Origin: Macrostomum lignano | Lineage: Eukaryota | Reading direction: 5' to 3' | NCBI GenBank assembly: GCA_002269645.1 | Contig: NIVC01000305.1 | Span: forward strand, 485,845-549,844 | DNA: 64,000 nt | Shown: piece by piece, positions 26,718 through 62,872 of the stretch | Position numbering within the stretch: position 1 is the first letter of the stretch | Layout of the letters: each line of letters starts with the position of its first letter | Translations under genes and position numbers: made by a program | The notes under the pieces: model-generated | What the model saw: the letters and a program-made list of their open reading frames with translations, nothing else | Database searches by the model: none | What the model was told of the DNA's origin: nothing

Positions 26718-28775
26718 GTCCGTCGTCTCGGACTCGCAATAGTCAATTGCTCATAGAACGCTAGGAGATTCCTCTCGTCTCTGTCTCTCGTCAGATTCAA
26801 GCGCTGATTTAGCGGCGGTTTCGGTTGTCGACTTTCGATTAAGTTGATCATCATCGCGATGGCAGAGTCAGCACGCTGATGGGTCTGGAGCTCCTCGCGG
26901 GTGACTGGCCTCGGGATGTGATCAGTTAGATTCAATGTTTGGCGTCGGTTAGTCGAATTAGGCGGCGCGGCTTCGGCTGTGGCGGCATGGTTCTGGGTCT
27001 GGAGCTCCCTCCGCATGATCGCTACTCTGACCGATTGCCGGGCTGTTGCATTTGAAGGCCGATCCTCGTCGGTCATTTCGGCGTCATTGTCGGCAGAATT
27101 AGATTTGTCAGCAGATGAGGCCGAGGGTGAGGCAGCAGAGCTGTCCGCGTCACTGCTGAATCTCACTCTTTTCTCGAACACCGGACTGCGAGCGGGTTGG
27201 CAGCGGTCGTCGCTGGCTGCGCTGTGGTCGCTGTCCTCGTCGCCTTCAGCTAGTAGACGGCGGCTCCTTGAAGGGCAACATGTCGTGCTGCTAAAGCTGG
27301 TGGGCGACCTCTGTGAGTCTCGAAAACGGCTGGCTGATGGCCTCGGCTTCGTCGCCGGCGGGTGCAGCGCTGTCAGCGGCTCGCTGTCGGCTGTCGATGT
27401 TGCTGGCGGCGTAGCCTCGCCGTTGGACTCTTTCGGCTTCGTCGGCGGTTTTCGTCGATTCCGGCGGGTCGGTTGCTTCTTGCTTGGTGGAGGGCTACGA
27501 TGGCTGCTGTCGTGGACCTTCGGCGCCACTGCGCCCGTTATCGCGACTGGCTGCATGCTTACTTTGGTCCTCATCAGCTGTCTCGCGCTGAGCCTCCTCC
27601 ATGCATTTAGCGCCGTTCTCGGGCCGTCTCGAGAGACCGTCGGCGTTTTGATGCTGACTTGATTTTTGATGCTGATCTTGAACTCGAATTCACTGAGGCG
27701 CTGTAGCCATCGTCCAAAGATTCCTACTTGTTGAGTTCGCCTTAAGATCCAAGTCAATGCGGCATGGTCAGTTCGGCAGATGAACTTCTTGGCCAGCAGG
27801 TAGATTCGGAAGTGTCACATCCCATCTACGACTGCCAATAGTTCTTGTTTCGTAATCGGATATCGGGCTTCGGCCGGTTTGAGTCGCCGGGAGAAATAGT
27901 CAATTGGTCGCTCAACTCCATCAGCTTGGCGTTGGCTCAGGCAGGCTCCGATTCTGGTCGCAGAGGCATCCGTGTTCAGGATAAACATAACATTAGGATC
28001 CTCGCTGAACTGCGGATACGCGAGCACTGATGTTGAAGTCAAGGCTGCCTTGAGCTGGTCGAACGCGCCTTGCTGGGCTTTTCCCCATAGACAATTGAAA
28101 TTGCGGATTTTCTTCTCTTTAATTAAATCGTGGAGCGGAGCAGCAAGTAGCCAGGTACAAATTTTGCATAGTAAGCGCACGTGCAGACAAAACTTTTAAG
28201 TTGTCGCGCTGTTCTTGGTCTTGGCCAGGTTTGAATTGCCTCGATCTTAGCTGGGTCGGTCTTGATTCCATCCTTCGTTACAACATGTCCCAGATAGTTT
28301 AGACTTGCCCGAAATAGATGGCACTTCTTGCCTTTAAACTTGAGATTAGCGTCTTGGACTCGCTTGAGTACTTCTTCCATATGCCGTAGATGGTCGTTAA
28401 ATTTCTTAGAATAGACGATTACGTCATCCAGGTAGGCTATTGCACTTTTTTAGGCAATCCCGTTAAGCACAGCGTTCATGAGGCGCATGAAGCTAGCTGG
28501 TGCTGAACTTAATCCCATAGGCATAACATTTTAGGTGAATTGTCCGCGGTGCAGCGTAGCGAAAGCAGTTAGATCTTGATCTTCTGGACGCAGAGGAATT
28601 TGGTAGTAGCCGCTGTTCAAGTCAAACGTGCTGAATAGCTGGCTTCCTTCGAGGCTGGCGAATGCTTCTTCGATGTTCGGTATCGGGTACATATAAAAGT
28701 TTTCTGAGATTATATACTTCTAATTTCTCAATCCCCCCAAACTATTTCTTTCAGCTGGGGGACAGTGACAGAGAA

Positions 28776-31700
28776 ATGAATCAGCCAGAGAATCTTAACA
28801 GTGCCACTAAAGCTGCTCAAGATGATGATGAAGATTGTCCAGATCTGGTGAGTCTGGATGAAATCCCAGTAGTAGCTTAGCCAATGCTGAGCCTGCAGTC
28901 ACTGATCTGCCTCCAGTGCCTGTCACAGTGATCACTGGTTATCTGGGCGCTGGAAAGACTACTTTGTTGAACTACATTCTCACTGAGCAGCACGGCAGAC
29001 GGATTGCTGTAATTATGAACGAATTTGGCGACTCTGCCGCTGTTGAGGCGGCTCTCACTGTTGCTGAGGACAATCAGACAGGTAATTTTTGAGAGGCTTA
29101 GCGTAGAGGCTTAAGTACTATGCAGATATTTACGCAGTCATACGCACAGGCACACGCTGACACAGGAGTTTACAGCTTCCCTAACTTTATTAGCCGTTAA
29201 TTGCACGATCAGAGGCAAAGATTTCAATTTAGCCTCAAATTAATCTGACTGCACTTGGAATTGAGCCTGGGCCGCTGGCGCATTAGAGCGCCATACCACT
29301 AGAATTACTTAAATAGTGACTACTCTAGTGACTTTTTAACAACTCAAACGACTGTAATGCAACTGAGAGGCGACTGTTGAGTTACGAGCGCATCACGTGA
29401 GTTGCAGGATTTTTCGCGTGAGTTGCGAAAAAAACTACTAACTCAAGTAGACAAAATAGAGTTGCTATAAATGTGAAAGGCGATTATAATTCATAAAGTG
29501 ACGTGATGCAGATGCGCTTTAGACGCAACTCAGTGATTCTACAGATACGACTCTTTGGAATCGTAAAACCGTAAAATCCCAACGGGCATGAATATCTTCC
29601 CTAAAATTCCCCAAAATCCCATCAGAAGGGATCTTTTGCCTAAAATCCCCAAAATCCCATCTAAAGGGATCTTTTGCCTAAAATTCCACCAAATCCCATC
29701 TGAATGGATCTTTTGCCTAAAATTCCTATAAATCCCATCTGAAGGGATCTTTTGCCTAAAATTTCCCCTAATTCAATCTGAAGGGATCTTTTGCCTAAAA
29801 TTCCCAAAAATACCATCTGAAGGGATCTTTTGCCTAAAATTTCTTAAAATCCCATTTGAAAAGATATTTTGCCTAAAATTCCCCAAAATCCCATCTGAAG
29901 GTATCTTTTGCCTATATTCTCCCAAAAATCCCATCTACAGTGCTGCTCTGTTTAGCGTTGTGACTGTGACTGAGCCATTAGATCGATTAGGTGAGACCTG
30001 GGGTGTGATCTAAAGTCTATCAACTAGCTACTCACTCTCAATCCGCTCAGGCGACAGCAAGACCTCCAGCGGTGGCCAGAAGCGCTACGAAGAATGGCTG
30101 GAGCTGGGCAATGGCTGCCTCTGCTGCTCGTTGAAACATGCTGGTGTTGCCGCGATTGAACGGCTGATGGAGCGTCGAGGTCGATTTGATCACGTGCTGC
30201 TGGAGACAACTGGATTGGCTGAGCCGGGGCCCATTGCAGCTCTGTTTTGGTTGGATGAGCAGCTCGAGAGTTTGGTCTGTCTGGATGGCTTTGTCACTGT
30301 GGTGAGCTGGTTTGGAGTGGGTCTGGGTTTAAGCTGTGAGATGTGGGATCAGAGTCTATAATGGGATCAGGGATTCACGTAATGGGATCAGGGATTCAGA
30401 TGATGGGATCAGGGATTCACGTAATGGGATCAGGGATTCAGATGATGGGATCAGGGATTCAGGTAACGGGATCAGAGATTCAGATGATGGGATCAGGGAT
30501 TCAGATGATGGGATCAGGGATTCAGGTAATGAGATCAGGGATTCGGGTAATGGGATCAGGGATTCAGGTAATCGGATCAGGGTTTCAGGTAATGGGATCA
30601 GGGATTCAGGTAATGGGATCAATTATTCAGGTAATGGAATCAGGGATTCAGGTAATGAGATCAAGGATTCAGCTAATGGGATCAGGGATTCAGATAATGG
30701 GATCAGGGATTCAGATGATGGGATCAGGGATTCGGATAATGGGATCAGGGATTCTGATAATGGGATCAGGGATTCAGGTAATGGGATCAGGGATTCGGGA
30801 TTTGTAATGGTATCAGGGATTTAGGTAAAGGGACAAGGGATTCAGGTAATGGGATCACGGATTCAGATGATGGGATCAGGGATTCGGATAATGGGATCAG
30901 GGATTCGGATAATGGGATCAGGGATTCGGATAATGGGATCAGGGATTCGGATAATGGGATCAGGGATTCGGATAATGGGGTCAGGGATTCGGATAATGGG
31001 ATCAGGGATTCGGATAATGGGATCAGGGATTCAGGATTGGTAATGGGATCAGGATTGGTAATGGTATCAGGGATTCAGGATTGGTAATGGGATCAGGATT
31101 GGTAATGGTATCAGGGATTCAGGATTGGTAATGGGATCAGGATTGGTAATGGTATCAGGGATTCAGGATTGGTAATGGGATCAGGATTGGTAATGGTATC
31201 AGGGATTCAGGATTGGTAATAGGATCAGGATTGGTAATGGGATTTGTTTACCGATCCGATCCCCGAACGCCAATCAGGTGGACAGCCTGAATGCCAGCCG
31301 CCAGTGCTCAGAAGTCGAATGGCAACGCCAGGTAGCCTGCGCTGACACCGTGCTGCTAAGCAAAACCGACCTGCTATCGGATCAGTCAGCATCATCTTCA
31401 GCTGCGGAGTTGACCTCATTGGACAGTGTGGAAGCTCTGGTCAGAGGCGTCAACTCCGCTTGTAGAATCGCTAAAAGTGAGCGAGGCATCGCCCCGCTGG
31501 ATGCCATCCTAGGCCTGGGGGCCTATCGCAATGCTACCGACTTGGCTGACCGACTGCACGACACTGGCGCGAGTAGCGAGTCGCATCGAAGCAAACTGCG
31601 AGCTGATGTCGGCACTCTGGCTATCGACTTCGAGCCTGACGCCGTGTTCGAGCAAGATCGAGTTGAACGACTGCTCGGCGACCTGTTGTGGCAAAGCGAT

Positions 31701-32632
31701 AAACCAATGTTTCCCGAAGCTGCGTTTCTGAGGACTAAGGTGACAAAATATGTGTCTTTTTGTGTGAACTCATGTGTCTTTTTGTGTGAACTCATGTGTC
31801 TTTTTGTGTGAACTCATGTGTCTTATTGTGTGAACTCGTGTGTCTTATTATGTGAACTCGTGTGTCTTATTATGTGAACTTATCATGTGTCTCATTGTTC
31901 ATTGTGTGAACTCATCATGTGTCTCATTGTTCATTGTGTGAACTCATCATGTGTCTCATTGTGTTCATTGTGTGAACTCATCATGTGTCTCATTGTGTGA
32001 AATGTGAGAAAATCTCACCTGTCTATTCAGTGGACTCCCACCTGTCTATTCAGTGGACTCTCACCTGTCTATTCAGTGGACTCTCACCTGTCTATTCAGT
32101 GGACTCTCACCTGTCTATTCAGTGGACTCATCTGCCTATTCAGTGGACTCTCACCTGCCTATTCAGTGGACTCATCTGCCTATTCAGTGGACTCATCTGT
32201 CTATTCAGTGGACTCTCACCTGTCTATTCAGTGGACTCATCTGTCTAAGGCTGTATTTTTGGTTGACTCTCTTAATTGCAGTGCGTGTTAAGATGTCTCC
32301 AAAAAACCTTACAGGCTCACTGTACACAGCAATCAGTTAATTGCAATTAGTTTGTCATGATATAAGTTAGATTCTTGCAGACTAATTAATCTACTCATCT
32401 ACTCAACCAGGGCCTGCTCCGCCTCATAGACGAAAGCTGTGAAGCTTCGTCCCCAGCTCTTTACTCCGTGCAGGGGGTGTACGAGCTGTTCGAATTGCGG
32501 CCGGCTCCAGTTTCTAACGATACTGATGGTTGTTCCGCCCAGCAACAGCTGCAACGAATCGTGTTCATTGGACAGAAGTTGCCGCCAGCTGAACAACTCA
32601 AAGACCTGTTTGTTGATTGTCAAGTTTGGTGA
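28776..32632 (+). CDS. ZNG1: ZNG1/CBWD (COG0523/CobW family zinc metallochaperone GTPase); exons 28776-29081, 30051-30301, 31278-31739, 32411-32632
   Basis: N-terminal EDCPDLV; GYLGAGKTT; NEFG; GCLCC; [10 protein letters not shown]; SKTD; QGVYELFE...IVFIG. All splice phases are consistent except one missing A at ~28861 (GAAATCCC). Confidence 0.92.
29590..29940. repeat. Intronic minisatellite, ~39-bp unit (AAATCCCATCTGAAGGGATCTTTTGCCTAAAATTCCCC)
   Basis: About 9 copies in ZNG1 intron 1. Confidence 0.9.
30358..31240. repeat. Intronic minisatellite, 21-bp unit (GGGATCAGGGATTCAGGTAAT) with derived higher-order units
   Basis: Fills ZNG1 intron 2. Confidence 0.95.
31755..32245. repeat. Two adjacent intronic minisatellites (~22-bp TGTGTGAACTCATGTGTCTTTT; ~23-bp CACCTGTCTATTCAGTGGACTCT)
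   Basis: ZNG1 intron 3; switch at ~32005. Confidence 0.9.
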
Positions 32633-33361
32633 GTAATTGCTGTTGAAGTGTTTTGTTTTTTTTTTGGTTCATTATAAATAATGCATCACTAATCCACTGA
32701 TACTCGTACTAGAGCAACTAGATGGACATTTGCGTGTAAGCTACTTTCAGTTCAGTAGTAATTTAAACAGAAGCATTTTGATGTATTTTTAAAGCCAAGG
32801 CTTTTTTAATGGCTCTTACCCCCCCCCCAGATCTTAAACCCTCCAACCGCGCCGTCCCACATTACCCCCCCCCACCCCAATTTTTATTGCCTTTCTTGGA
32901 ATTCCAGCCCAAAGCTGCCATGTACACTTCAGTGGACTGGCCAATGTACATTATTGCTGAACCAATTAGCAAGTTGTTTTACGCCTGCAAGCTTGGGCTT
33001 CTGAACTTATCAAAGTCATTTCAGCTGCCTCTATTTTTATAAAATAGCTCATGTATTCTTCTTTGCTACTGAACTGAAAGTAGAAAGCTGTTTTACTGAG
33101 TATATAGAACTGAGTCGCTCATCTAGTTATTTACAATCCTATTCTGTTGACAATTGTAGATACAATGTAACAGAGCTGTGTACTACTAGATGGATGTTTT
33201 ATATTGTTTATATGTTCACACATTTATCGTAGATATTTGGTGAGTGCTCAGTTTTAGTACTTGAGAAATCCCCCGTGAGGGAGTTGCTAATGCTATTTGA
33301 GTCTGAATAATCTAAATGACTCACCTGTCAACCTCATGCCCGCAGCCAATCCCAGTCCCTG

Positions 33362-35039
33362 ATGTCAGTCATTCGTCACCACCTGCTTCTCAGCTGCACG
33401 GGCACTGCTGCAATCTCTAGCATTCAACGGTGCCACCAGCTCACCTATCGATCTGAACCGTGTGACCTTCTACTAATTTTAAAATCACAGTCTTCTAACA
33501 GATCAACTACAGATTTAATAGCTAGCATTGACAATCATCCACAATTGAAATTGATTATTGCCCGACGCGAACTCGCGACCTACTCGTCAGCAGCACCAAT
33601 TATCGCTCTGCGTTTGATATTGAATCGAGCGGTGTGCCTTTATCGAATTTTGAATGCCAAAGTTCCTCAATTGCGGCAAGATTATTCGGCAAAGTCATCT
33701 GTCAGTCCAGTGCTGTTTGTTCGCTATTATCCCGATTGCGAGTTCCGGTCTCTTCGTGCCCTGCTGTGGGGCTGTTTGGCTCATCGACTATTGAATTTGG
33801 AAGGTTTGCCTACTACTAACAGTAGTGCAAACACTGCTACTTTGAACCGCGGTGTGATTGAGTTTGACTCGAGATATCGTGACTGGCTTACTACTGACAG
33901 ACACATTTCATTAGTAGTGTCTTCTGCGTCTGATTTGCTAAATTTTACTCATAGAGATGACTCGAGGGCCCCGCGCGACTTGATAGTTGGTCCGGTAAGG
34001 ATTTGAGCTGGCGATATTTTTTCTTAAAAGTACCTAATATAGTACAATAGTAAGTAGTATATGAAGGTCAGTGAATGATTGATTCAATAATTTATGGACA
34101 AAATGAAAATTTCACTTGTGTAAGTCGCCATCACAGAAGATTCTGTCTGTGATCACCGCTTTTGAGAGTGCAGGTAAAGTCTCTCAATCTTTGCGAGTGA
34201 CGCAGCTTAGCAACGCCGCGGCAGACTTGAGTTGAGGAATGAAGCGGGGGAGCGGTGTGCGAGGTTTGGACGGATTAAAGCTAACCCCGATCAGTTTTCC
34301 CGGATCTTTTATTTCAGAATAGTCCAAGAGAAATTGTTCACTGGCACTTAGAGTTGCGACTTTTCAATGTCTTAGCAAAATTGGCATCTTGTTCTTAATC
34401 TCTTCCCAGGTCGATCCAGCCTCCTACTGCAGCCTCGCCGACTACATCGCCAAAGTGTCTTCATCAATCTCAGATCGGTGCATTGAGGACAGCAATTCTG
34501 GTGTGAGTCTGTCAAGTCGGTTAGCACAGTCGGTTTTGATCGCTGAGTTGCTCTGGTGTCGGCCTCAGGAGACGGCTAAGTTCTCGCAGGAACGTCGGCG
34601 GTCCCTGCTGTTCGCCCTGTACAACAGGGCCCGAGCTGAGTCCCTGATGCAGCGAGCTGCTGGAGTATCAGCGCCAGGTGGACTTGACGAGTTGGCTGCA
34701 TCAAGCAGATCCACTGATGAAAATTCAGTCTGGGCGTTGGCCTGGGGTCAGCTGGACACCCTGGTTGATTTATTGGCTCAGTGCCAAACTGATCTGCTGC
34801 TCAGTAATTCTGCTGATTGTTGTTGCTATCGCGATTTAAACCAGCTGGTGCACCGATTGGAGCAGCTCTGCCGAGAATTTGCCAGATTTTATCACCGAGT
34901 TCGAGTGCTGCCTGCTGCTGATGTGTCAGAGCCGGGCAGCCAACTGATGACTAACAAGATTATGTTAGTTAATAAAACTGCTCAGTGGATTGATTTGTTG
35001 AGTCGGTTGATTGGTATTGAGCGGGTGACTTCCATGTGA
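33362..35039 (+). CDS. DALRD3: DALR anticodon-binding domain-containing protein 3-like; exons 33362-33994, 34410-35039 (~420 aa)
   Basis: C-terminal LEQLCREFARFYHRVRVL...LLSRLIGIERVTSM is a DALR domain without a synthetase core; IVGP|V junction in phase 0. The N-terminus may be longer. Confidence 0.7.
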
Positions 35040-35094: not shown

Positions 35095-36020
35095 CTAATC
35101 TCTACCTTCAAGTTTTAGCCTAAACCCTGACCTAAATCCTAACCTAAACCCTAAACTGGACCCTAACCTAGACCCTGATCTGAACCGTAACCTAAACCCT
35201 AAACTGGACCCTAACCTGGACCCTGATCTGAACCGTAACCTAAACCCTAAACTGGACCCTGATCTGAACCGTAACCTAAACCCTAAACTGGACCCTAACC
35301 TGGACCCTGATCTGAACCGTAACCTAAACCCTAAACTGGACCCTAACCTAGACCCTGATCTGAACCGTAACCTAAACCCTAAACTGGACCCTAACCTGGA
35401 CCCTAAACTGGACCCTAACCTAGACCCTGATCTGAACCGTAACCTAAACCCTAAACTGGACCCTAACCTGGACCCTGATCTGAACCGTAACCTAAACCCT
35501 AAACTGGACCCTAACCTGGACCCTGATCTGAACCGTAACCTAAACCCTAAACTGGACCCTAACCTAGACCCTGATCTGAACCGTAACCTAAACCCTAAAC
35601 TGGACCCTAACCTAGACCCTGATCTGAACCGTAACCTAAACCCTAAACTGGACCCTAACCTAGACCCTGATCTGAACCGTAACCTAAACCCTAAACTGGA
35701 CCCTAACCTAGACCCTGATCTGAACCGTAACCTAAACCCTAAACTGGACCCTAACCTGGACCCTGATCTGAACCGTAACCTAAACCCTAAACTGAACCCT
35801 AACCTAGACCCTGATCTGAACCGTAACCTAAACCCTAAACTGAACCCTAACCTAGACCCTGATCTGAACCGTAACCTAAACCCTAAACTGAACCCTAACC
35901 TAGACCCTGATCTGAACCGTAACCTAGACCCTGATCTGAACCGTAACCTAAACCCTAAACTGGACCCTAACCTAGACCCTGATCTGAACCGTAACCTAAA
36001 CCCTAAACTACACTCTAACC
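35095..36020. repeat. 48-bp higher-order repeat built of eight telomere-like hexamers (CCTAAA CCCTAA ACTGGA CCCTAA CCTAGA CCCTGA TCTGAA CCGTAA)
   Basis: About 19 copies, with 6-bp periodicity inside the 48-mer. Confidence 0.92.
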
Positions 36021-36602
36021 TAAACTGCACCTGAACCTTAACTTGAACACCATCCTAAACACACTTTACCATTCTAGGATTTTAGATTTTTTTCGAATTA
36101 AGTTTACTGTGCCGCAAACTAATGATACTGTAGGATCGCTTGCATTCTGGTGTAGTCACTTTGCAATAAAATATGAACTGTTAGGTTCTATTAAATCTGC
36201 TAGCTGTTATTGTTTAGTTTCTAATGACTTCTGATTATGTTTTGTTTTTTTTATTAATTTTTTTCTGTCTTCAGATGAGAAGTAAAAGTGCTAAGATATG
36301 CGTTTAAAGCATTAGTTGACAAAAAATCTGTAGTTTGCGAACTGGTACGAAAAGTTTCTGTACGAAAATTTGCCGGTGGGTTGTGTAATTCGCAGTCACA
36401 CCCATTTGGGCCAACCCCAAGGCACTGAGAGGGTACATGCCCTGACGATTAAAAAATGCAAGGGCCGCTGTAAAGTATTGGGGCGCTTGATCAACATTTT
36501 ATAGGTGCTAGGTGTTAAATAATTTTTTTAATCCTACGGTAAAAATAAACAAAACCTACTTTATTACTTACTTTTCAGAAATCTCATGTTAATTTGGCAG
36601 CC

Positions 36603-37172
36603 ATGCGAGTGTGGGAGCGCAGTCACGTGTTCGAGCACAGCTGGGAGACTGTGGTTGAAGCGGCTATGAATAAATATCCTAATCCAATGTTTAATGGCGT
36701 TTTAAGCCAAGATGTGGTGTCTCGGTCAGTCAGTGAGGACGGCATTCTTCGAACTCACAGATTATTCGGCCTGCTGTTTACAGGTGTGGTACACCGGTTG
36801 ACTAATTTAGGATTTTACAGACAGTTTAACTCCTTGATTGATCTGGATGTTGACGTCTGGTACGGTAGCGAGCACACTATGGTAGATCCTAGAGCTAGGA
36901 GTTACCTATTGCACAGTAAGAATATTACATTTAGCAGAGGTATTACACTTGAGGAACGCTTGGAGTATAAACCTCATCCAGACAATCCCACAGGAAGGAC
37001 AGTTCTGCAGCAGTCTGCCAGAATCTGCTGTCCTTGGTGGCCTATTGGTGGCCTAGTGGAAACTATTTTAGAAGATTTTGTGTACGACAGAATGGCTGCC
37101 AAAGGTCCCAGGGCTATTGAGTGGGTCATTGCTAATCGAATAGCAGATACCACTGCTGATGCTTCGTCCTGA
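36603..37172 (+). CDS. PRELID3B: PRELI/MSF1-domain mitochondrial lipid transfer protein (PRELID3/SLMO/Ups2-like), intronless, 189 aa
   Basis: MRVWERSHVFEHSWETVVEAAMNKYPNP...DVVSRSV...LRTHRL...LEERLEYKPHP...GPRAIEWVI. Confidence 0.88.
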   Translation: MRVWERSHVFEHSWETVVEAAMNKYPNPMFNGVLSQDVVSRSVSEDGILRTHRLFGLLFTGVVHRLTNLGFYRQFNSLIDLDVDVWYGSEHTMVDPRARSYLLHSKNITFSRGITLEERLEYKPHPDNPTGRTVLQQSARICCPWWPIGGLVETILEDFVYDRMAAKGPRAIEWVIANRIADTTADASS

Positions 37173-43640: not shown

Positions 43641-43771
43641 AGGCTCTGGATGGGTAGGAATCAGGTAATCGACTTCAATTTGTACAGGGCGATAAGAGAA
43701 CCGTGCCTTACTCCTCAATATTATAATGCTCATAAACCGTAATAATAATATTGCGGCCTATTTATTATTGC

Positions 43772-51271: not shown

Positions 51272-54200
51272 ATGCATCTCACTAGCGGTATTATAGCCGT
51301 GGCGCCTTTGGTTCACGCTAATGATGAAGGATCGACTGCTGTTGCTCCGTCGCCTTCGCATTATCGCCTTCTGAGCTCTACTAAACTTGCTCAGCCAAAG
51401 AAGAATGTCCTTGATAAAACACCGGAAAAATCTTCTAAGCCTTCGAATTCTACATCAAGTAGCGCCGCTGCGTCAACCGTTATTGAACGTTCTCGACCGA
51501 AGCGTCGTCATAGGCGTTCAAATTCGTTCGATTCGGTGTCTACTTTGAGTCGTCGGTCCTATCTAAACATCGATTTGAGGAGTCGTGCAAAATCGATTGT
51601 GAAATCGTCTGCCCTAGCCAATGCTGTTGGTATAGTTGGTAGGCAGTTGCTAGCGTGGCTGAAATGCGACTGGGAGCAGCAAAGCGTACCGGAAGATCAA
51701 GATGGGTTAGTTGGCCTAATTAAAATGTAGTCTGTTGTTGCTAATGAAGCAAGTCCTACCCAGCAATCAGCATTGCTGTATTACATCTTTTAAAACCTAG
51801 GACAAATCACTAGTTACCTGTGTCCGAATTCAGGATGCCAAATTTAAAACCAGGGTGCCAGAGGTATCTACTGTCTCATCTTAGGTGGTAGCTACTGTCT
51901 CTCAGATGGTAGCTACTGTCTCTTAGATGGTAGCTACATAATCTACTGTCTCTCAGATGGTAGCTACTGTCTCTTAGGTGGCATCTACTGTCTCTCAGAT
52001 GGTATCTACATAATCTACTGTCTCTCAGATGGTAGCTACTGTCTCTTAGGTGGCATCTACACTCTACAGTCTCTCAGATGGTATCTACAGTCTCAGGTGG
52101 TATCTACTGTCTCTCAGGTGGTATCTACTGTTTCTCAGGTGGTATCTACTGTCTCTCAGGTGGTATCTACTGTCTCTCAGGTGGTATCTACAGTCTCTCA
52201 GGTGGTATCTACTGTCTCTCAGGTGGTATCTACTGTCTCTCAGGTGGTATCTACAGTCTCTCAGGTGGTATCTACTGTCTCTTAGGTGGCATCTACACTC
52301 TACAGTCTCTCAGGTGGTATCTACAGTCTCAGGTGGTATCTACTGTCTCAGGTGGTATCTACTGTCTCTCAGGTGGAATCTACTGTCTCTTAGGTGGCAT
52401 CTACACTCTACAGTCTCTCAGGTGGTATCTAAAGTCTCAGGTGGTATCTACTGTCTCTCAGGTGGTATCTACTGTTTCTCAGGTGGTATCTACTGTCTCT
52501 TCAGGTGGTATCTACAGTCTCTCAGGTGGTATCTACAGTCTCTCAGGTGGTATCTACTGTCTCTTAGGTGGCATCTACACTCTACAGTCTCTCAGATGGT
52601 ATCTACAGTCTCAGGTGGTATCTACTGTCTCTCAGGTGGTATCTACTGTTTCTCAGGTGGTATCTACTGTCTCTCAGGTGGTATCTACTGTCTCTCAGGT
52701 GGTATCTACAGTCTCTCAGGTGGTATCTACTGTCTCTCAGGTGGTATCTACTGTCTCTCAGGTGGTATCTACAGTCTCTCAGGTGGTATCTACTGTCTCT
52801 TAGGTGGCATCTACACTCTACAGTCTCTCAGGTGGTATCTACAGTCTCAGGTGGTATCTACTGTCTCAGGTGGTATCTACTGTCTCTCAGGTGGAATCTA
52901 CTGTCTCTTAGGTGGCATCTACACTCTACAGTCTCTCAGGTGGTATCTACAGTCTCAGGTGGTATCTACTGTCTCAGTTGGTATCTACTGTCTCTCAGGT
53001 GGTATCTACTGTCTCTCAGGTGGTATCTACTGTCTCAGGTGGTATCTACTCTCTCAGGTGGTATCTTTTGTCTCAAGTATCAAATCTAGGACCTAGGTTA
53101 CAGGCTAATTAAGATAATGCTCTAATTTCCTTTACTTATCTTAAAATTATAATTCGATTTTATAATCTGTACAAAAATCCAAAGACCTGGGCTTGCTTTT
53201 AATTTACATGCTTAAACAACCTTAAATGAAATCTTAAATTAAATCCCATTAATTGAATATCAACATACTCAATAGTTCACCTGACGCATCTCTTCCCTGC
53301 TGGAAATGCTTCCAGGCGTCGGCAGATCCACAGTCCAGCAGACAGTCTGCTAAGTCGGCCAGGCCAATTAGGCCAAAGCAGAGGCGCTTTCAGAGGCCTA
53401 CTAAGCCCATTGCTAATCCTTCTATCGATGTGCATCGCTCGCTGTCTGTTAGAGTCCCATCTAAGATACGGCCCTCTGGCTGGAAATCCTCTTAGCTGCC
53501 TGGCTGTTGGAGGCGGTCCAGCCTGCATTGCCGGCCTGGTCTGCGTTGCTTTTGCCGCTCTGAATGCGTCTGCTTTTGCCGCTTCTTCTGGCTATCGGAG
53601 GCTCGGAGTGGCCAGCAGTGCCTGTCTGCTTCTGGTGGCTCCCGCTTGCATTGTGCTGTGGTCTAGGCCTTCGCCCAGTGAGTATTTCCTATTATCTTTA
53701 AACTTGGGTTGAGTAGTGTGTTATGAGCAGCCTTGAATACCTTGATTTAAAGCTTTTTTGAAATACTTCTCTGTACCCTTAAAACCCTGGTGTGTTAATG
53801 TACCCCATATAAAACCCAGGTGTGTTAATGCACTCCATAAACTCAGGTGTAATATAACCCTCCGTCTCGCTATTCCCGCTTCAACAGTTGTCGGCTTCGC
53901 AGGAATATCAATCAGTGTGGCTCTGTTCCTCAAGCTGACCAATTTGCACCTGCAGCGTCAGCGCATTGCTAGGCAACTCGTTGAACTTCGGGTTGTCAGT
54001 GTCAACAGAATGCTACTAATTAGCTTTGCTCAACTAGCAGGACTATTAGTTGCTATAGTGGCTCTGACTCAACAGTGGTTAATGCCTTCTCTAGCTGCCG
54101 CCTCATCTGATCCAGCTGCTAATAGCTACGAGTACAATGCGCCCTGCTGGCTGGTGATGGTTGAGAGGCAACTGCGCCTGTCGCCTCCTGTTATTGCCGT

Positions 54201-54862
54201 CTGCTTGGCTGCAGGAGCGGCAATGGATCGGATTCTGAAACTGATGGATTGCTGCTTTCAGTCTGGCAGTGACTTTGTAAGTGCTATTTCTTTATTTTTA
54301 GCTTTTCATTGTTCGTTTCTAAGTTTAGTGTAAGCTTTTAAGATTTTTAGGAATCACCCTTTGAAGTTATTTAGGAATCGCCCTTTGAAGTTATTTAGGA
54401 ATCGTCTTTAAAAGTTGCTTGGGAAATGCCTTTCCATGCCAATCATTGTAACGCAAGAATTCCACAAAAAGAAACATAAGAAATCATTTTTCACCAAAAA
54501 AATATTTTCAGCAGCAGAAACCCTCAGCTGAGGACACTACTATCAGTAGCAAACTAACTCAAACCAAGCGACTCTGGTGGAATGCTTCAAGCCTGACCAA
54601 CCTGCTGAAGTCTGTGTGGCCATCCGCAGCGGAATTCAATCTGCCTAGTCTAGCCTGGGCTCTCCTGGCCCAGCTGGTTGTGTCCGCAGTGCTTCGATCG
54701 CCCCAGCCGTGGCCTCTGCTCACTGTGGCCATCGTGCTGCCCATTCTGGATGCCGCCTGCGTCAGATTCGGCAACAATGCCTTCGTTTGGCTCTGCCTTG
54801 TGCTTGGCCTGCCAGTGCTAGCTAGACTGGGCTATGCTGACTACTGTCAGTACTATCTTTGA
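51272..54862 (+). CDS. Divergent DGAT1-like MBOAT protein, catalytic His replaced by Ala; exons 51272-51705, 53316-53677, 53888-54276, 54512-54862 (511 aa, frame intact)
   Basis: IHSPADSLLS...FRGLL...ARCLLESHLRYG, LFLKL, QQWLMP, ER-LRLSPP, WWNASSLT and GNNAFVWLCLVLGLP parallel DGAT1 motifs in order. All splice phases match (2, 1, 0). Confidence 0.8.
51860..53075. repeat. Intronic minisatellite, 21-bp unit (CTCAGGTGGTATCTACTGTCT) with higher-order blocks
   Basis: DGAT1-like intron 1. Confidence 0.96.
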
Positions 54863-55189: not shown

Positions 55190-56620
55190 AATGGCTGGGA
55201 TTCTGAGAGAATTGAGATTAATTAAGATTAAAAGCTAGAGATGGCTGTGATTGGGGGAGAGAACAGAGTTAAATAAGATTAAAGGGGATTAGAGATGGCT
55301 GTGATTGGGGGAGAGAACAGAGTTAAATAAGATTAAAGGGGATTAGAGATGGCTGGGATTGGGGTAGAACAGAGATAAATGAGATTAAAGGGGATTAGAG
55401 ATGGCTGGGATTGGGGTAGAACAGAGATAAATGAGATTAAAGGGGATTAGAGATGGCTGGGATTGGGGTAGAACAGAGATAAATGAGATTAAAGGGGATT
55501 AGAGATGGCTGGGATTGGGGTAGAACAGAGATAAATGAGATTAAAGGGGATTAGAGATGGCTGGGATTGGGGTAGAACAGAGATAAATGAGATTAAGGGG
55601 GATTAGAGATGGCTGTGATTGGGGTAGAGAACAGAGATAAATGAGATTAAAGGGGATTAGAGGTGGCTGTGATTGGGGGAGAGAACAGAGATAAATGAGA
55701 TTAGAGATGGCTGTGATTGGGGGAGAGAACAGAGATAAATGAGATTAAAGGGGATTAGAGATGGCTGTGGTTGGGGTAGAGAACAGAGATAAATGAGATT
55801 AAAGGGGATTAGAGATGGCTGGGATTGGGGTAGAGAACATAGCTAAATGAGATTAAAGGGGATTAGAGATGGCTGTGATTGGGGTAGAGAACAGAGATAA
55901 ATGAGATTAAAGGGGATTAGAGATGGCTGGGATTGGGGTAGAGAACAGAGATAAATGAGATTAAAGGGGATTAGAGATGGCTGTGATTGGGGTAGAGAAC
56001 AGAGATAAATGAGATTAAAGGGGATTAGAGATGGCTGTGGTTGGGGTAGAGAACAGAGATAAATGAGATTAAAGGGGATTAGAGATGGCTGTGGTTGGGG
56101 TAGAGAACAGAGATAAATGAGATTGAGGGGGATTAGAGATGGCTGTGATTGGGGTAGAGAACAGAGATAAATGAGATTAAAGGGGATTAGAGATGGCTGT
56201 GGTTGGGGTAGAGAACAGAGATAAATGAGATTAAAGGGGATTAGAGGTGGCTGTGATTGGGGGAGAGAACAGAGATAAATGAGATTAGAGATGGCTGTGA
56301 TTGGGGGAGAGAACAGAGATAAATGGGATTGAGGGGGATTAGAGATGGCTGTGATTGGGGCAGAGAACAGAGATAAATGGGATTGAGGGGGATTAGAGAT
56401 GGCTGTGATTGGGGGAGAGAACAGAGATATATGAGATTGAGGGGGATTAGAGATGGCTGTGGTTGGGGAGAGAACAGAGATAAATGGGATTGAGGGGGAT
56501 TAGAGATGGCTGTGATTGGGGCAGAGAACAGAGATAAATGGGATTGAGGGGATTAGAGATGGCTGTGATTGGGGGAGAGAACAGATAAATGAGATTAAGG
56601 GGGTTTAGAGATGGCAGGGA
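55190..56620. repeat. Purine-rich minisatellite, ~54-bp unit (GAGATTAAAGGGGATTAGAGATGGCTGTGATTGGGGTAGAGAACAGAGATAAAT)
   Basis: About 26 copies between the DGAT1-like gene and SIRT6. Confidence 0.96.
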
Positions 56621-56699
56621 TTTTTTAGAGAGAATAGAGATGATTAGGGTCCATAACGTTATAGAAAAACAGTCGGTACGGCAACACACCAACAGCTCA

Positions 56700-56720: not shown

Positions 56721-58091
56721 TCGGCTAACTACTCGGCCGGGCTGTCCGAATACTCGGACAAAGGCACTCTGGGCCTGCCCGAAACTCACGAGTCCCAAGC
56801 CGATTGGGAGTTGAAAGCTCGTCAGCTGGTGGACCTGATTCGACAGCCCGGAGCTCGAGTCGTTGTCCACACGGGAGCCGGCGTCAGCACCTCGGCCGGA
56901 ATCCCGGATTTCCGCGGCCCCAACGGCGTCTGGACTCTAGAACGCGAAGGTCGAACAGTTGAAGCCGGGGCCAAGTTTGAAGAGGCTCAGCCAACACTTA
57001 CTCACGCCGCTCTGGTTGCCTTGGAAACGGCCGGATTCGTTCACTACCTGGTGACGCAGAATGTTGACGGTTTGCACCTTCGGTCTGGATTTCCTCGCAA
57101 TCGGTTGTCGATTTTGCATGGCGATATGTTTGTTGAGCGGTGCGCCCGGTGCGGCTTGCACCGGGCGAGAGACCAACCGGTGGAGACGGTCGGTCAGAAA
57201 GCCACCGGGAGGCGGTGCGGAGCTCCGGCTAGGCGAGGCAGAAAGAAATCCGTCAAAGCCGGTGGCGATGCTGGTGACAGTGTTGACGGCATCTGCGGCG
57301 GCCAGATGCTGGACACGGTGCTAGACTGGGAGCATCAGCTGCCTCAGGTAGATCTTCGTCGAGCTCGCGAGCATTCCAGTCGGGCTACCGTTAATCTGAC
57401 TCTGGGCACCAGTTTGCAGATTGTTCCGGCCGCCGATCTGCCCACAATGGGCGGCAAATTAGTCATTATTAATCTGCAGCCTACAAAGAAAGATGCTCAG
57501 AGTTATCTGCGTATAAATGCTCGTTGCGATCTTGTCATGGCGTTGGTCTGTAGAGAACTGCTCGGCATTGATGCCGAAGAGATGCTGAGGCCGTTGCTTC
57601 GCCTGCAACCGTTGAGACTGTTTTCTAAGCATACGCGAAAGAGTGAACGGTTTCCATGGCGATTCGCCGAGTCTGATCAGAATCAAAAAATCGATAGAGA
57701 AGCTCAAAAAGAAGCTAAATGCGAGATTCCAAGTACAGAACGCACTTTGGAAAGTTCAAAATGCACTTCGGAAAGTGCACATTGTACTTCGAAAAGTACA
57801 GAACGCACTTTGGAACGCATTTCTGAAAGTACAGAACGCACTTTGGAAAGTTCAAAATGCACTTCGGAAAGTGCACATTGTACTTCGGAAAGTACAGAGC
57901 GCACTTTGGAACGCATTTCTGAAAGTACAGAGCGCACTTTGGAAAGTGCTCAACGCACCTCGTCGGAGAGTTCAAATCAAAGTATCAAAATCAAAGATGA
58001 AGTTGTCACCGATATGAAAAAGAAACTTGAACATTCGAGCGCAGATGAGTCTAACTCTGCCACCGCGACTAAACGTTCAAAGCTTGCTTAG
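56721..58091 (+). CDS. SIRT6: NAD-dependent deacylase sirtuin-6, single exon, with repetitive C-terminal tail
   Basis: SANYSAGLSEYSDKGTLGLPE, HTGAGVSTSAGIPDFRGPNGVWT, TQNVDGLH, LHGDMF, LDTVLDWE, LGTSLQI, INLQPTKKD. Confidence 0.95.
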   Translation, partial: SANYSAGLSEYSDKGTLGLPETHESQADWELKARQLVDLIRQPGARVVVHTGAGVSTSAGIPDFRGPNGVWTLEREGRTVEAGAKFEEAQPTLTHAALVALETAGFVHYLVTQNVDGLHLRSGFPRNRLSILHGDMFVERCARCGLHRARDQPVETVGQKATGRRCGAPARRGRKKSVKAGGDAGDSVDGICGGQMLDTVLDWEHQLPQVDLRRAREHSSRATVNLTLGTSLQIVPAADLPTMGGKLVIINLQPTKKDAQSYLRINARCDLVMALVCRELLGIDAEEMLRPLLRLQPLRLFSKHTRKSERFPWRFAESDQNQKIDREAQKEAKCEIPSTERTLESSKCTSESAHCTSKSTERTLERISESTERTLESSKCTSESAHCTSESTERTLERISESTERTLESAQRTSSESSNQSIKIKDEVVTDMKKKLEHSSADESNSATATKRSKLA

Positions 58092-58619
58092 CTTACATTT
58101 CTCTTGTACCGTTTGAACGTTCAAACATAGACATTTTCGCATTTATAAATATCGCTTGGTTTTGGTTTATTTATGTCTTGTACAAATACGTTCGTACCAG
58201 TATTTAACTTACAAACCAAGTAGTCTGTTAATCACTTACCAAATGCGTGTGTTTTTAGCTTTTCGTGCATGTCAATAGTGTTATACAAATCTATGCAATT
58301 ATCAGTTTTCTCTATAAAAAATTGTTGTGTTATACGTATAAAATCTCCGATAGTTTTAAGCTGTTTCGGTTATTATTTTTCCTAGTTTTATTATATTTTA
58401 AAGTATAAAATAAAATGCCTACTATCCTACTTTAAGTAGCTTAAGTAGGAATAATTTGATACATTGCTACATTATTTTCATTTTATGCCATGATATGATT
58501 TATTGCAGCTCAGTGAAACAGACTCACAACGTCGAAATCAATACAGATAGGACTCTAGGCCCCACTACCCTACATATACAACACACAGATACATGTAGGG
58601 TACAAACATAGATACAACA

Positions 58620-60760
58620 TACTAATATAGATACATCACATCATCTAGATACAATACAACACTACGCCATAGATACAGCATCACCATCTAGATACAATAC
58701 AACACTACGCCATAGATACAGCATCACCATCTAGATACAACACAACACTACGCCATAGATATAGCATCACCATCTAGATACAATACCACACTACGCCATA
58801 GATACAGCATCACCATCTAGATACAACACCACGCCATAGATACAGCATCACCATCTAGATACAATATAACATTACGCCATAGATACAGCATCACCATCTA
58901 GATACAATATAACACTACGCCATAGATACAGCATCACCATCTAGATACAATATAACACTACGCCATAGATACAGCATCACCATCTAGATACAACACCACG
59001 CCATAGATACAGCATCACCATCTAGATACAATATAACACCACGCCATAGATACAGCATCACCATCTAGATACAACACCACGCCATAGATACAGCATCACC
59101 ATCTAGATACAATATAACACCACGCCATAGATACAGCATCACCATCTAGATACAACACAACACTACGCCATAGATATAGCATCACCATCTAGATACAATA
59201 CCACACTACGCCATAGATACAGCATCACCATCTAGATACAACACCACGCCATAGATACAGCATCACCATCTAGATACAATATAACACTACGCCATAGATA
59301 CAGCATCACCATCTAGATACAATACAACACTACGCCATAGATACAGCATCACCATCTAGATACAACACAACACTACGCCATAGATACAGCATCACCATCT
59401 AGATACAATACCACACTACGCCATAGATACAGCATCACCATCTAGATACAACACCACGCCATAGATACAGCATCACCATCTAGATACAATATAACACTAC
59501 GCCATAGATACAGCATCACCATCTAGATACAATATAACACTACGCCATAGATACAGCATCACCATCTAGATACAATACAACACTACGCCATAGATACAGC
59601 ATCACCATCTAGATACAATATAACACTACGCCATAGATACAGCATCACCATCTAGATACAACACCACGCCATAAATACAGCATCACCATCTAGATACAAT
59701 ATAACACTACGCCATAGATACAGCATCACCATCTAGATACAATACAACACTACGCCATAGATACAGCATCACCATCTAGATACAATATAACACTACGCCA
59801 TAGATACAGCATCACCATCTAGATACAATACAACACTACGCCATAGATACAGCATCATCATCTAGATACAATATAACACTACGCCATAGATACAGCATCA
59901 CCATCTAGATACAACACCACGCCATAGATACAGCATCACCATCTAGATACAACACCACGCCATAGATACAGCATCACCATCTAGATACAATACAACACCA
60001 CGCCATAGATACAGCATCACCATCTAGATACAACACCACGCCATAGATACAGCATCACCATCTAGATACAACACCACGCCATAGATACAGCATCACCATC
60101 TAGATACAATATAACACTACGCCATAGATACAGCATCACCATCTAGATACAACACCACGCCATAGATACAGCATCACCATCTAGATACAATATAACACTA
60201 CGCCATAGATACAGCATCACCATCTAGATACAATACAACACTACGCCATAGATACAGCATCACCATCTAGATACAATATAACACTACGCCATAGATACAG
60301 CATCACCATCTAGATACAATACAACACTACGCCATAGATACAGCATCATCATCTAGATACAATATAACACTACGCCATAGATACAGCATCACCATCTAGA
60401 TACAACACCACGCCATAGATACAGCATCACCATCTAGATACAACACCACGCCATAGATACAGCATCACCATCTAGATACAATACAACACCACGCCATAGA
60501 TACAGCATCACCATCTAGATACAACACCACGCCATAGATACAGCATCACCATCTAGATACAATATAACACTACGCCATAGATACAGCATCACCATCTAAA
60601 TACAATACCACACCATAGATACAGCATCACCATCTAGATACAACACCACACCATAGATACAGCATCACCATCTAGATACAACACCACACTACGCCATAGA
60701 TACAGCATCACCATCTAGATACAACACCACGCCATAAATACACCACCACCCCATAGATGC
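58620..60760. repeat. Minisatellite, 38/43-bp variant units (GCCATAGATACAGCATCACCATCTAGATACAA[TATA]ACAC[T/C]AC)
   Basis: About 50 copies with a constant core and a few recurring tail variants. Confidence 0.97.
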
Positions 60761-60932
60761 AACACGAACCTAAAACCCTATGCGTCACAGACTCGCAGAT
60801 GTAAGAATATCGTACGTCTTAGGTACTTCTTAGGTACTCGTGCTTCTACTCTCGTCGTACAGAGCACGCCTTATTCACCTGTAACCCATCCAACCCATTA
60901 TCTCATGCCAGTCAAGCAGCTCCAACAGACAA

Positions 60933-62872
60933 ATGGCATCCCCAGTCAAGAGCAGCAGCATGCTGCAGTCCATGAAGTCGCTCGGTACTAAAGCCGCAGC
61001 CGCAGCTCTTGACTGGCTAGGCTCAAACGAAGCAACCAATATTCTCAACGATTCCACGGCATCCATGGAATTCGAACTTCGCCTTGCCGAACGAGTGCTT
61101 GCCTCGATTGATTGGTCTAACTATGCTGCCAGAAGTGCCACCGTCTGGACAAAGCATCAGCGTCCGTTGCCTAGCGACGCCAAGAGTCCAGCTCGCCTAG
61201 CGGAAGCTCGTTCGGCCGGTCTGGAAGCCCTCGACTGCGGCCTGCTGCGTTTAGCGGCGCTGCGATTTTCTGAATGCATCCGGCACGCCCAGCCAGGTAG
61301 CTCGGATCTTGCCGTGGCTTTCGCCAACCGTTCGCTGGTGTTCAAACGTCTCGGTTGCTATGCGGAAGCCATAGCCGATGCTGAAGCGGCTCTACGGTTG
61401 CCGTATGGCGACGAGCGGGCCGGTAAGCTGACAGGTCGCATCGCTGACTGTCAGAAGAGAATGTCAGTGTCGAAATCCTCAAGTGTTTCCCAGCCAGCAG
61501 CAGCATCTCAATCGTTGTTGCGGGATTTTAATCCCCAGCTGCCGCACGCCAGCGCCAAGGTGCAGCTCGCTCTGGCAGACGAAAGTCGCGGTCGCTGTCT
61601 TCTTACTCTTGAAGACGTCGATGTTGGAGACCTGTTGGTCTCTGAGCCGGCTTTTAGCGCCATTCTGCTGTCAAATCTTCGCGATAGTCACTGCTCAGCC
61701 TGCTTGGCACCTTGCCAACGGTTGCTGCCCTGTAGCGACTGCTCAGTTGTTGGCTTCTGCTCGGAGACTTGTCGGGATAACGACCCGGTCCACAGGGTGG
61801 AATGCGGATGGCTGGCTGGATGGCTGGACTCGGCATTCAATGCGAGCATTGGTCGGCTCGCTTTGCCACCGTGATCGCCGCTGGCGGTCCGGTTTCCGTT
61901 GCTCAGGCTGTTGCTAAGGCGAAGAATTTCAAAGATTTCGAATCGGTTTCGGATCTGCTGGCGATTATCAATCGGTGCTGGCTTTGGTAGCTGGAGAACG
62001 ACAGCGAGAGAGTCGCGATTTGGCTCAGCGAGTCGCCGTTGCCTGCCAGATGGCTCTGCTGCTCAGTGTTGAGTCTGAGTCAAATTCTCAGCTAGATGTA
62101 GCCGCCCCACTTGTTGCAGCACTGCTGCGCCATCTGATGCTGGTGCCGTGCAATGCTCACGATGTAACTGCATTGTCCGCTCCGCCGAGTAGGCTGACTA
62201 CTAGTAGTAGTACTGACAATGGCAGTTCGTAGATATTTCTGCCTGACTATCAGAGACATTGGGTCGGCTGTGTATCCTACGGCCAGTTTAATTAATCATT
62301 CTTGCGATCCGAATGTATCGCGAGTCACTTGTCCCGGTTTGAGACTGGAGATTCGAGCTCTCCGACCGATTGCTAAAGGCGAGGAGCTCCTTGACAACTA
62401 CGGTTGGCATTGGGCTGTGCATCCGAAACAGCAGCGCCAAGAAAGTCTTGCAGCTCAGTATTTGTTCGACTGCGACTGTGTTGCTTGCACCAATGAGTGG
62501 CCACTGTATGATGGCTTGTTGGCGTTGGAGCCTAGATGGATTGATGCGATTGCTAAGGACGATAAGAGCGAAGTCGAGGGTGCCGATAAAAACAATTTAG
62601 ACGATGTTGCCAATTTTGTTGTCGATCCAACAATCAAAGCCGAGGTGGAATCAACTGTCGGGGTTGTAGCCGAGTTCGTGTCCTCATTCTCCACTTCCGC
62701 GCCACTCTTAGCTAACGAGCTGAACTCGCGTTTCGAGGCCCGACTGTTGTCGCTAATCCGCCTGCTGCAGCGTCGTGTCAGACGGCCGCATCGGTGGTTT
62801 AACGACGCCGAAGAGTGCGTCAAGATGGTGTGGAGCGCGCGGGGCTGCTTGGACACCGGCGGGACTGACTGA
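60933..62872 (+). CDS. SMYD4: SET and MYND domain protein (SMYD4-like): TPR, split SET, MYND; three frame breaks as assembled (~61865, ~61958, ~62230)
   Basis: TPR LAVAFANRSLV; SRGRCLL...VGDLLVSEP; CSACLAPC...PCSDC...FCSETCR...HRVEC; CNAH; GSAVYPTASLINHSCDPNV; ELLDNYG; YLFDCDCVAC. Confidence 0.82.

Follow-up and report, generated by a model that had tools for sequence, protein, structure and literature searches.

A same-strand run of genes in Macrostomum lignano that is probably transcribed as a few spliced-leader-resolved polycistronic precursors

We analyzed a 64-kb stretch of the Macrostomum lignano genome, hereafter called the window, which is the terminal 64 kb of contig NIVC01000305.1 (Mlig_3_7, GCA_002269645.1). 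Eight genes follow one another on its plus strand between 28750 and 62872: ZNG1, a DALRD3-like gene, PRELID3, a C2H2 zinc-finger gene (ZnF), MICU1, a DGAT1-like gene that is the sixth of the run (gene6), SIRT6, and a SMYD4-like gene. The initial annotation of this DNA had read the run as one polycistronic unit resolved by spliced leader (SL) trans-splicing. We find that polycistronic transcription is supported for sub-blocks of the run, and not for all eight genes as one, by the sharing of gene-name prefixes among subsets of the genes and by an 806-aa coding sequence (CDS) that joins two of them.

The eight genes proved to be real and co-oriented on the plus strand, with no opposite-strand gene between them. 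Pfam scanning of open reading frame (ORF) pieces from 28 to 64 kb gave, on the plus strand and in this order, cobW/CobW_C, DALR_1, PRELI, zf-C2H2, EF-hand, SIR2, and SET. On the minus strand, the ORFs from 28.7 to 64 kb gave zero Pfam matches. Seven Pfam-identified genes and one 362-aa gene, all on the plus strand, thus show the uninterrupted orientation expected of an operon at the level of annotated CDSs and Pfam domains. A ninth same-strand gene, encoding phosphomevalonate kinase (PMVK), lies just past the window and is present on the overlapping and paralogous contigs. The protein accessions of all nine cluster genes are consecutive in GenBank (PAA52719-52726 on a paralogous contig), so no further CDS is annotated between them.

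Several copies of this region could be compared. A 27.8-kb contig (L002) overlaps the final 15.9 kb of the window with 22 differing positions, of which 21 are single-base indels, mostly in short homopolymer runs. Paralogous copies of the whole locus lie on NIVC01003194.1 and NIVC01001474.1, and gene order and strand are the same in all three copies. This fits the three subgenomes described for M. lignano (PMC10733133). GenBank and UniRef entries for cluster members also carry this species name. The paralogous copies are 98-100% identical outside repeats, which makes a selection comparison uninformative.

We built gene models by enumerating canonical introns to reproduce the annotated product lengths, followed by an exact-sequence look-up of the products. 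The look-up confirmed the models of the 386-aa ZnF, a 252-aa MICU1 fragment, the 362-aa gene6 product, and the 806-aa ZNG1-DALRD3 CDS. Two features of the public annotation matter here. In Mlig_3_7, only SL-read peaks and poly(A) sites served to divide transcriptional units into genes, and TransDecoder was then used to call the ORFs (PMC5730564). Units that cluster at 95% identity share a prefix, and each gene taken from a unit is numbered by a suffix, g1, g2, and so on (PMC5730564). The M. lignano SL itself is a 35-nt sequence, CGGTCTCTTACTGCGAAGACTCAATTTATTGCATG, ending in TTGCATG, and the motif enriched at its trans-acceptors is [T/C]TNCAG (PMC8629364).

ZNG1, a CobW/COG0523 GTPase gene (28755..32632, +; Pfam cobW 1.7e-37), has exons at 28755-29081, 30051-30301, 31278-31739, and 32411-32632. 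Compared with the paralogue, one A is missing from the window copy at about 28865, which shifts its frame. A mini-intron in exon 1 was considered as the cause of the frameshift and rejected, since the paralogue directly shows the 1-bp difference. The gene is preceded by the acceptor TTTCTTTCAG (28745..28754, +), which matches the trans-acceptor motif and is a putative site of SL trans-splicing at which the SL AUG would be in frame. On NIVC01001474.1, the partial ZNG1 CDS PAA67572.1 begins exactly after an identical TTTCTTTCAG, corresponding to window position 28754.

The 3′ end of ZNG1 is unusual. Its stop codon TGA lies within a consensus 5′ splice site, TTTG/GTGAGT (32626..32634, +), and splicing here removes the stop. 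This donor is conserved in the paralogue and used in the annotated CDSs of two copies. In the window, it is spliced to 33345 (CCCGCAG) to give the in-frame 806-aa ZNG1-DALRD3 CDS PAA85774.1, which our model reproduces exactly. On NIVC01001474.1, the same donor (~18480) is spliced to AACAG (~19002; window ~33173), and a TG/A stop is recreated about 170 nt before DALRD3. The DALRD3-like gene itself (33346..35039, +) has exons at 33346/33356-33994 and 34410-35039 and its own ATG at 33362. It matches Pfam DALR_1 at 2e-5 (25.1 bits against a curated cut-off of 22.3), and a PDB search with its product gave no relative. In the annotation, DALRD3 appears solely as the 3′ half of the 806-aa CDS. Two candidate acceptors precede it, 33345 (CCCGCAG, the stronger) and 33355 (CCCAG), and both are conserved. 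The 713-nt spacer between ZNG1 and DALRD3 contains no AATAAA or ATTAAA.

PRELID3 (PRELID3/SLMO-like; 36579..37172, +) is a single-exon gene with a Pfam PRELI match of 3e-25, and a database record gives precisely its 197-aa product at these coordinates. The annotated CDS begins at 36579 with KSHV and no Met, directly after CTTTTCAG. Initiation at an SL AUG would extend the frame by eight codons ahead of the genomic ATG at 36603. A search of assembled public RNA for this SL-initiated form (MKSHV) found none. ZnF (39810..41531, +; 386 aa, own ATG) has a unique splice model that equals PAA85776.1 (Mlig009362g2). Its intron at 40458-41018 contains a satellite, and good acceptors lie at 39792 and 39795, 15-18 nt before the ATG.

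MICU1 (43772..48152, +) has exons at 43772-44263, 45063-45367, 46060-46218, 46777-47044, and 47878-48152. Its product aligns to human MICU1 in PDB with E=6e-117 over its full length (residues 1-372 against 15-386) and matches Pfam EF-hand_8, and so belongs to MICU1. A 1-bp gap near 45118 in the window cuts the annotated CDS to 252 aa from 45311 (PAA85777.1, Mlig009362g1); the intact paralogue has 497 aa. The final 10 nt of the SL (TTATTGCATG) occur once in the window, at 43765-43774, and the ATG of this 10-mer is the start codon of MICU1. Chance alone would give about 0.12 exact matches; when one mismatch is permitted, the 5 sites found agree with the 5.6 expected. This SL-like 10-mer could be a coincidence, a source of false SL reads, or a relic of a reverse-transcribed SL-mRNA. 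In an ML2-assembly gene model, UniProt A0A1I8GTW3 (window ~32411-44263), the last ZNG1 exon, DALRD3, PRELID3, ZnF, and the first MICU1 exon are chained into one 832-aa protein, which enters PRELID3 exactly at the 36578 acceptor and ZnF at 39792. Such chaining is typical of operon genes merged by a gene finder.

Gene6 (53326..54862, +) encodes a divergent DGAT1-like multi-helix membrane protein of 362 aa. Its unique canonical model, with exons 53326-53677, 53888-54276, and 54515-54862, equals PAA85778.1. The CDS opens with IHSP right after GGCAG (the AG ends at 53325), and there is no genomic ATG. The annotated 5′ end varies slightly among the paralogues (362, 361, and 357 aa). Gene6 has no Pfam match even at E≤10 and no PDB match at E≤10, and a HMMER search of its last exon against 1.8 billion representatives returned only itself, with no relative outside M. 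lignano. Neither an MBOAT profile nor a solved DGAT1/SOAT sequence matched it, and a single-sequence AlphaFold model (pLDDT 47) was too poor for use. When it was compared with a human DGAT1 sequence, the Smith-Waterman score was 103 against 39 ± 5.7 for shuffles (z=11). The alignment is collinear (residues 2-357 against 68-476), and in the DGAT1 sequence the histidine of FFHEY stands opposite LAQLV. The catalytic histidine thus appears to be lost, and the DGAT1 label would stand for a very divergent, probably non-catalytic relative.

The initial annotation had let the DGAT1-like gene start behind an acceptor at 51256. The annotated gene starts at 53326, and the 157-codon ORF that follows 51256 (51257..51730, +) corresponds to no Mlig_3_7 CDS and has no Pfam match. 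We rejected this ORF as the DGAT1-like N-terminus, for it shows no DGAT1 similarity and has no good in-phase donor. The older ML2-based entry A0A1I8G4D6 in UniProt, named "GPI ethanolamine phosphate transferase 3", has it as the first exon.

SIRT6 (56721..58091, +) is a single exon of 456 codons with a Pfam SIR2 domain. It matches proteins named SIRT6 at about 50-58% identity, which places it in SIRT6, and three contigs of GCA_002269645.1 encode the same 456-aa protein as its ORF. The CDS opens with SANYSAGL, without Met, right after CTCCAG (56720). Seven SIRT6 homologues start with MS(V/L)(N/D)YA; the M. lignano SIRT6 aligns with them from residue 2 and lacks only the M. A 96-bp tandem repeat within the coding region (57731-57947) gives a repeated C-terminal tail, STERTLE...SKCTSESAHCTS. 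The third paralogue of SIRT6 is 93% identical, shorter, and without GenBank annotation.

The SMYD4-like gene (60933..62872, +) is a single exon of 646-647 codons with TPR, MYND, and SET regions. A Pfam SET match and PDB matches to SMYD2/3/1 (E=5e-25) show its membership of the SMYD family, and SMYD4 is preferred to the other SMYDs by length and architecture only. Compared with the overlapping contig, four single bases are missing from the window copy (61862, 61947, 62229, and 62242); the gene is intact in contigs L001 and L002. These gaps almost certainly arose through misassembly at the end of the contig, and the frame breaks in MICU1 and ZNG1 are probably 1-bp differences of the same assembly type. 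The 1-bp gaps in SMYD4, ZNG1, and MICU1 account for missing or truncated GenBank CDSs. In all three copies, the SMYD4 CDS is 5′-partial and starts at the codon after the genomic ATG at 60933-60935 (CAACAGACAAATG/GCATCC; window 60927-60936). The PMVK CDS starts without Met right after CCGCAG. In the alignment with the human enzyme, its residue 8 stands against human residue 9, so that it starts at the second residue.

On its plus strand, the region holds 95 occurrences of [CT]TNCAG, and an acceptor-like site near an ATG is therefore uninformative alone. The positions of the annotated CDS starts tell more. Because genes were cut only at SL-read peaks and poly(A) sites, a Met-less CDS whose first base directly follows an AG looks like the footprint of an SL site; we infer this from the way the annotation was made, as it is not a stated rule. 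Such starts are found for PRELID3 (36579), gene6 (53326), SIRT6 (56721), PMVK, and, in the NIVC01001474.1 copy, ZNG1. Annotation-level evidence thus supports SL trans-splicing of at least five genes of the run. Among the five acceptors proposed initially, 36578 and 56720 are each the base before an annotated CDS start, and 28754 agrees with the start of the paralogous ZNG1 CDS. The proposed site at 33355 exists and is conserved, yet annotated splicing at this place goes to 33345 alone; that at 51256 has no support. The statement that an SL AUG would be in frame at all five sites was correct.

In three genes, the SL would provide more than a 5′ end. SIRT6, PMVK, and gene6 have no genomic ATG at the conserved N-terminus, and an SL AUG would be in frame with each; their initiator AUG would therefore have to come from the 3′ end of the SL. 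The paper describing the M. lignano SL makes no statement on its AUG as an initiator (PMC8629364). The SL RNA gene is absent from the window, where no SL 12-mer occurs, and an Rfam scan of the window gave no RNA gene.

We measured spacers from each stop codon to the next start and subtracted only the arrays called by Tandem Repeats Finder (TRF). Tandem repeats make up 44% of 28750-62872, 61% of the spacer DNA, and 63% of the intron DNA. Hence, the claim that satellites inflate the spacers was correct, as published genome-wide for M. lignano operons. The DALRD3-PRELID3 spacer (1539 bp) holds a 48-bp minisatellite (35123..36043) and shrinks to 618 bp without it. The PRELID3-ZnF spacer (2637 bp) holds arrays of 21-bp units (37169-38282) and 39-bp units (39006-39622) and shrinks to 910 bp. 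In the ZnF-MICU1 spacer (2240 bp), 54 copies of a 31-bp minisatellite (41937..43653) leave 523 bp. In the gene6-SIRT6 spacer (1858 bp), 26 copies of a 54-bp minisatellite (55236..56622) leave 471 bp, and in the SIRT6-SMYD4 spacer (2841 bp) about 50 copies of a 43-bp unit (58608..60750) leave 698 bp. From ZNG1 to SMYD4, the repeat-subtracted spacers are 713, 618, 910, 523, 2695, 471, and 698 bp, and SMYD4-PMVK has about 2034 bp. The published operon rule asks for less than 1 kb between genes after subtraction of simple repeats and transposons (PMC8629364). Six of the eight gaps fall below 1 kb after subtraction of the TRF arrays alone.

The arrays also differ between copies. In ZNG1 intron 3, a 23-bp minisatellite has 10 copies in the window (32013-32238, 226 bp) and 177 copies on NIVC01001474.1 (14027-18095, 4,069 bp), where it stretches the annotated ZNG1 gene range to 9 kb. 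Minisatellites have expanded within the spacers and introns without breaking the gene arrangement.

The names of the genes reveal how they were grouped into transcriptional units. On NIVC01003194.1, the prefix Mlig009362 covers ZNG1 (g4), PRELID3 (g5), ZnF (g6), and MICU1 (g8). In the window, the same prefix covers MICU1 (g1) and ZnF (g2), and on NIVC01001474.1, Mlig005864 covers ZnF (g1) and MICU1 (g2). At the other end of the run, Mlig002561 covers SMYD4 (g4) and PMVK (g5), and Mlig029511 covers SMYD4 and PMVK on two contigs. From the numbering, the prefix of the SIRT6 unit is probably Mlig002561. The simplest reading is that RNA-seq assembly made transcripts spanning these prefix-sharing, non-homologous neighbours; from a shared prefix, we infer one precursor RNA. 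The units supported in this way are ZNG1(-DALRD3)-PRELID3-ZnF-MICU1 and SMYD4-PMVK, with SIRT6 probably belonging to the latter. The DGAT1-like gene stands between both units and may or may not be linked to either.

Taken together, we consider it likely that the locus is a block of SL trans-spliced genes transcribed as a few polycistronic precursors. The single unit proposed in the initial annotation is supported for the sub-blocks, with their shared prefixes and the 806-aa CDS; for all eight genes it is not supported, given the separate prefix of gene6 and the adjusted 2.7-kb spacer before it. In the mechanism we propose, RNA polymerase II would transcribe through several genes, and 3′-end formation of the preceding gene would release each downstream cistron. 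The 35-nt SL would then be trans-spliced to an acceptor of the [C/T]TNCAG type that closely precedes each coding region. It would supply a cap together with the initiator AUG for SIRT6, PMVK, and the DGAT1-like gene, and its AUG would also be in frame for ZNG1 and PRELID3.

Several observations weigh against this reading. Two spacers exceed the 1-kb criterion, namely MICU1-gene6 (5.2 kb, 2.7 kb without tandem repeats) and SMYD4-PMVK (3.1 kb, 2.0 kb without tandem repeats). The prefix of gene6 (Mlig015824, Mlig030436) is separate from those of its neighbours in all copies. ZnF has its own ATG and no direct SL-site evidence. Neither the MICU1 5′ end annotated in a paralogue (after TTGCATGC) nor the annotated SMYD4 start (after ACAAATG) has an AG directly before it; the nearest AG lies 7 nt upstream of the SMYD4 start, and an SL AUG from there would be out of frame. 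No separate DALRD3 CDS and no annotated 5′ end of its own exist in the three copies. No promoter was located for the run, and in the window copy the first acceptor has a retrotransposon 35-60 bp upstream of it. Furthermore, the SL sites and transcriptional units used here are read from the construction of the public annotation, and StringTie/TACO units can merge neighbours via read-through or repeat-derived reads.

The alternative that survives best extends the same idea. It takes the eight window genes and PMVK as one nine-gene operon with a single promoter upstream of ZNG1, and it explains the breaks between units as satellite mapping artefacts. Three paralogous copies keep the run co-oriented and without interruption, zero annotated genes lie within 10 kb upstream of ZNG1 in the paralogue, and the gene6-SIRT6 spacer is just 471 bp minus its satellite. 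Moreover, units tend to split in repeat-rich operon spacers, and two nine-gene operons have been published (PMC8629364). However, the MICU1-gene6 and SMYD4-PMVK spacers still measure at least 2 kb once tandem repeats are taken out, gene6 is separately named in every copy, and no transcript evidence joins MICU1 to gene6 or gene6 to SIRT6. We therefore regard a single nine-gene operon as unlikely, though it deserves more credit than the other alternatives.

It is also conceivable that each gene is SL trans-spliced and has its own promoter in the spacer, with the shared names and the ZNG1-DALRD3 CDS reflecting occasional read-through or assembly merging. This would not be out of character for the species, where about 60% of genes with SL trans-splicing lie outside operons (PMC8629364) and up to 2 kb of upstream sequence sufficed for faithful expression of the genes tested (PMC5730564); the raw spacers of 0.7-5.2 kb leave room for promoters. 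Yet unit sharing recurs independently in three paralogous loci and in two sub-blocks. The stop-overlapping ZNG1 donor is used in the annotated transcripts of two copies, which run into the DALRD3 region, and most spacers have only 470-910 bp of non-repeat sequence, 3′ untranslated region included. Individual promoters throughout the run thus seem improbable to us.

A chance origin of the strand run, without any meaning for transcription, is very hard to believe. The initially quoted 1/128 is arithmetically correct per block, it was applied to a block chosen post hoc, and such runs are expected somewhere among tens of thousands of genes. Against chance stand the annotation-level SL sites, the multi-gene units, and the cross-gene splice, as well as the 15% of M. 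lignano genes that lie in operons (PMC8629364).

A few polycistronic precursors remain our preferred reading, and three bolder readings can be drawn from the same observations. The whole nine-gene array could be among the largest M. lignano operons. DALRD3, for which none of the three copies has an annotated SL site, could be expressed only via the ZNG1 transcript, as an in-frame fusion or as the second cistron of a bicistronic mRNA. The SL 10-mer at the MICU1 start could descend from an SL-mRNA that was copied back into DNA and so equipped the gene with its own AUG. We hold these readings improbable.

A further proposal of the initial annotation, that the run groups mitochondrial/lipid genes with chromatin/tRNA genes, gained no support. 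A synteny check in Echinococcus was equally unfavourable: the neighbours of SIRT6 there are unrelated and lie on mixed strands.

The upstream boundary of the run in the window copy is the retrotransposon mentioned above. It is a 5′-truncated long terminal repeat (LTR) retrotransposon remnant (24632..28720, -; Pfam RVT_1, RT_RNaseH(_2), and rve) with frameshifted reverse transcriptase/RNase H/integrase ORFs, and it abuts the ZNG1 acceptor. It is absent from NIVC01001474.1, whose homology to the window starts only at 28691, 64 bp before the acceptor. The outron or promoter region of the window copy has thus been replaced. Farther upstream lie an ORF for a secretin-family G-protein-coupled receptor (4604-6343, +), an LRAT-domain ORF (7701-10124, -) that carries an in-frame 54-bp minisatellite (8181-8830), a LINE-type reverse transcriptase (12874-14328, -), and an ankyrin-repeat gene (14950-17900, -). 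With these mixed strands upstream, the same-strand run starts at ZNG1.

In summary, the initial observation was largely right and its interpretation right in kind, and the result adds little to published genome-wide work. Its local value lies in corrected gene models for one large cluster, with frameshifts traced to 1-bp differences, in three documented genes that would depend on an SL start, and in the flagging of the stop-overlapping donor between ZNG1 and DALRD3. The unusual details, that is, this donor, the three ORFs with a putative need for the SL AUG, and the 10-mer resembling the SL at the start of MICU1, are deduced from sequence and annotation. The run is a real feature of flatworm genome organisation that could be recognised from raw sequence alone. 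Since transgenesis works in M. lignano, the locus could be used to probe the tolerance of operons to satellites that expand by kilobases within their spacers.

Four known systems invite comparison. The SL2 operons of C. elegans, a comparison also drawn in PMC8629364, are polycistronic RNA polymerase II units of two to eight mostly unrelated housekeeping genes, with 3′-end formation coupled to trans-splicing. The M. lignano run would be alike in its polycistronic transcription by RNA polymerase II, its 3′-end-coupled trans-splicing, and its mostly functionally unrelated housekeeping genes. It differs in that just one SL is known in M. lignano, which has no dedicated SL2, and that the flatworm SL carries a usable AUG. 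In addition, its raw spacers span kilobases, owing to minisatellites, in contrast to about 100 bp in C. elegans. Transcripts of read-through or conjoined genes can splice out a stop codon. ZNG1-DALRD3 resembles such genes, as a stop-overlapping 5′ splice site joins the two frames in an annotated CDS (a predicted 806-aa fusion). Unlike in them, the join would fall within an SL operon, in which one would expect the SL at the downstream acceptor.

In Schistosoma, according to the accounts in PMC9851317 and PMC3772001 of Cheng et al. (2006, J Biol Chem 281:733), the 3′-terminal AUG of the SL was shown experimentally to act as an initiator, and more than 40 cDNAs need it. S. mansoni Sirt7 is a published example of SL-AUG use. 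Like these cDNAs, SIRT6, PMVK, and the DGAT1-like gene have no genomic start and begin directly after an acceptor. In contrast to the Schistosoma work, SL-AUG use in the free-living macrostomid is suggested by annotation and N-terminal alignments.

The closest system is the set of SL operons described in M. lignano itself (Wudarski et al. 2017, PMC5730564; Ustyantsev and Berezikov 2021, PMC8629364). In this species, 30% of the genes are trans-spliced and 15% lie in operons with repeat-inflated spacers; 75% of the operons have two genes, and the maximum is nine (PMC8629364). The run shares with them the species, the SL, the acceptor motif, the co-oriented conserved genes, the annotated multi-gene units, and the repeat-inflated spacers, six of eight of which drop below 1 kb after subtraction of tandem repeats. 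SL trans-splicing, nine-gene operons, and repeat-inflated spacers being published, and the annotation encoding the unit structure, the finding is known in kind. Compared with the published operons, we see no difference in kind: with eight or nine genes, the run would stand at the upper end of their size range, and two of its spacers exceed the threshold when tandem repeats only are subtracted.

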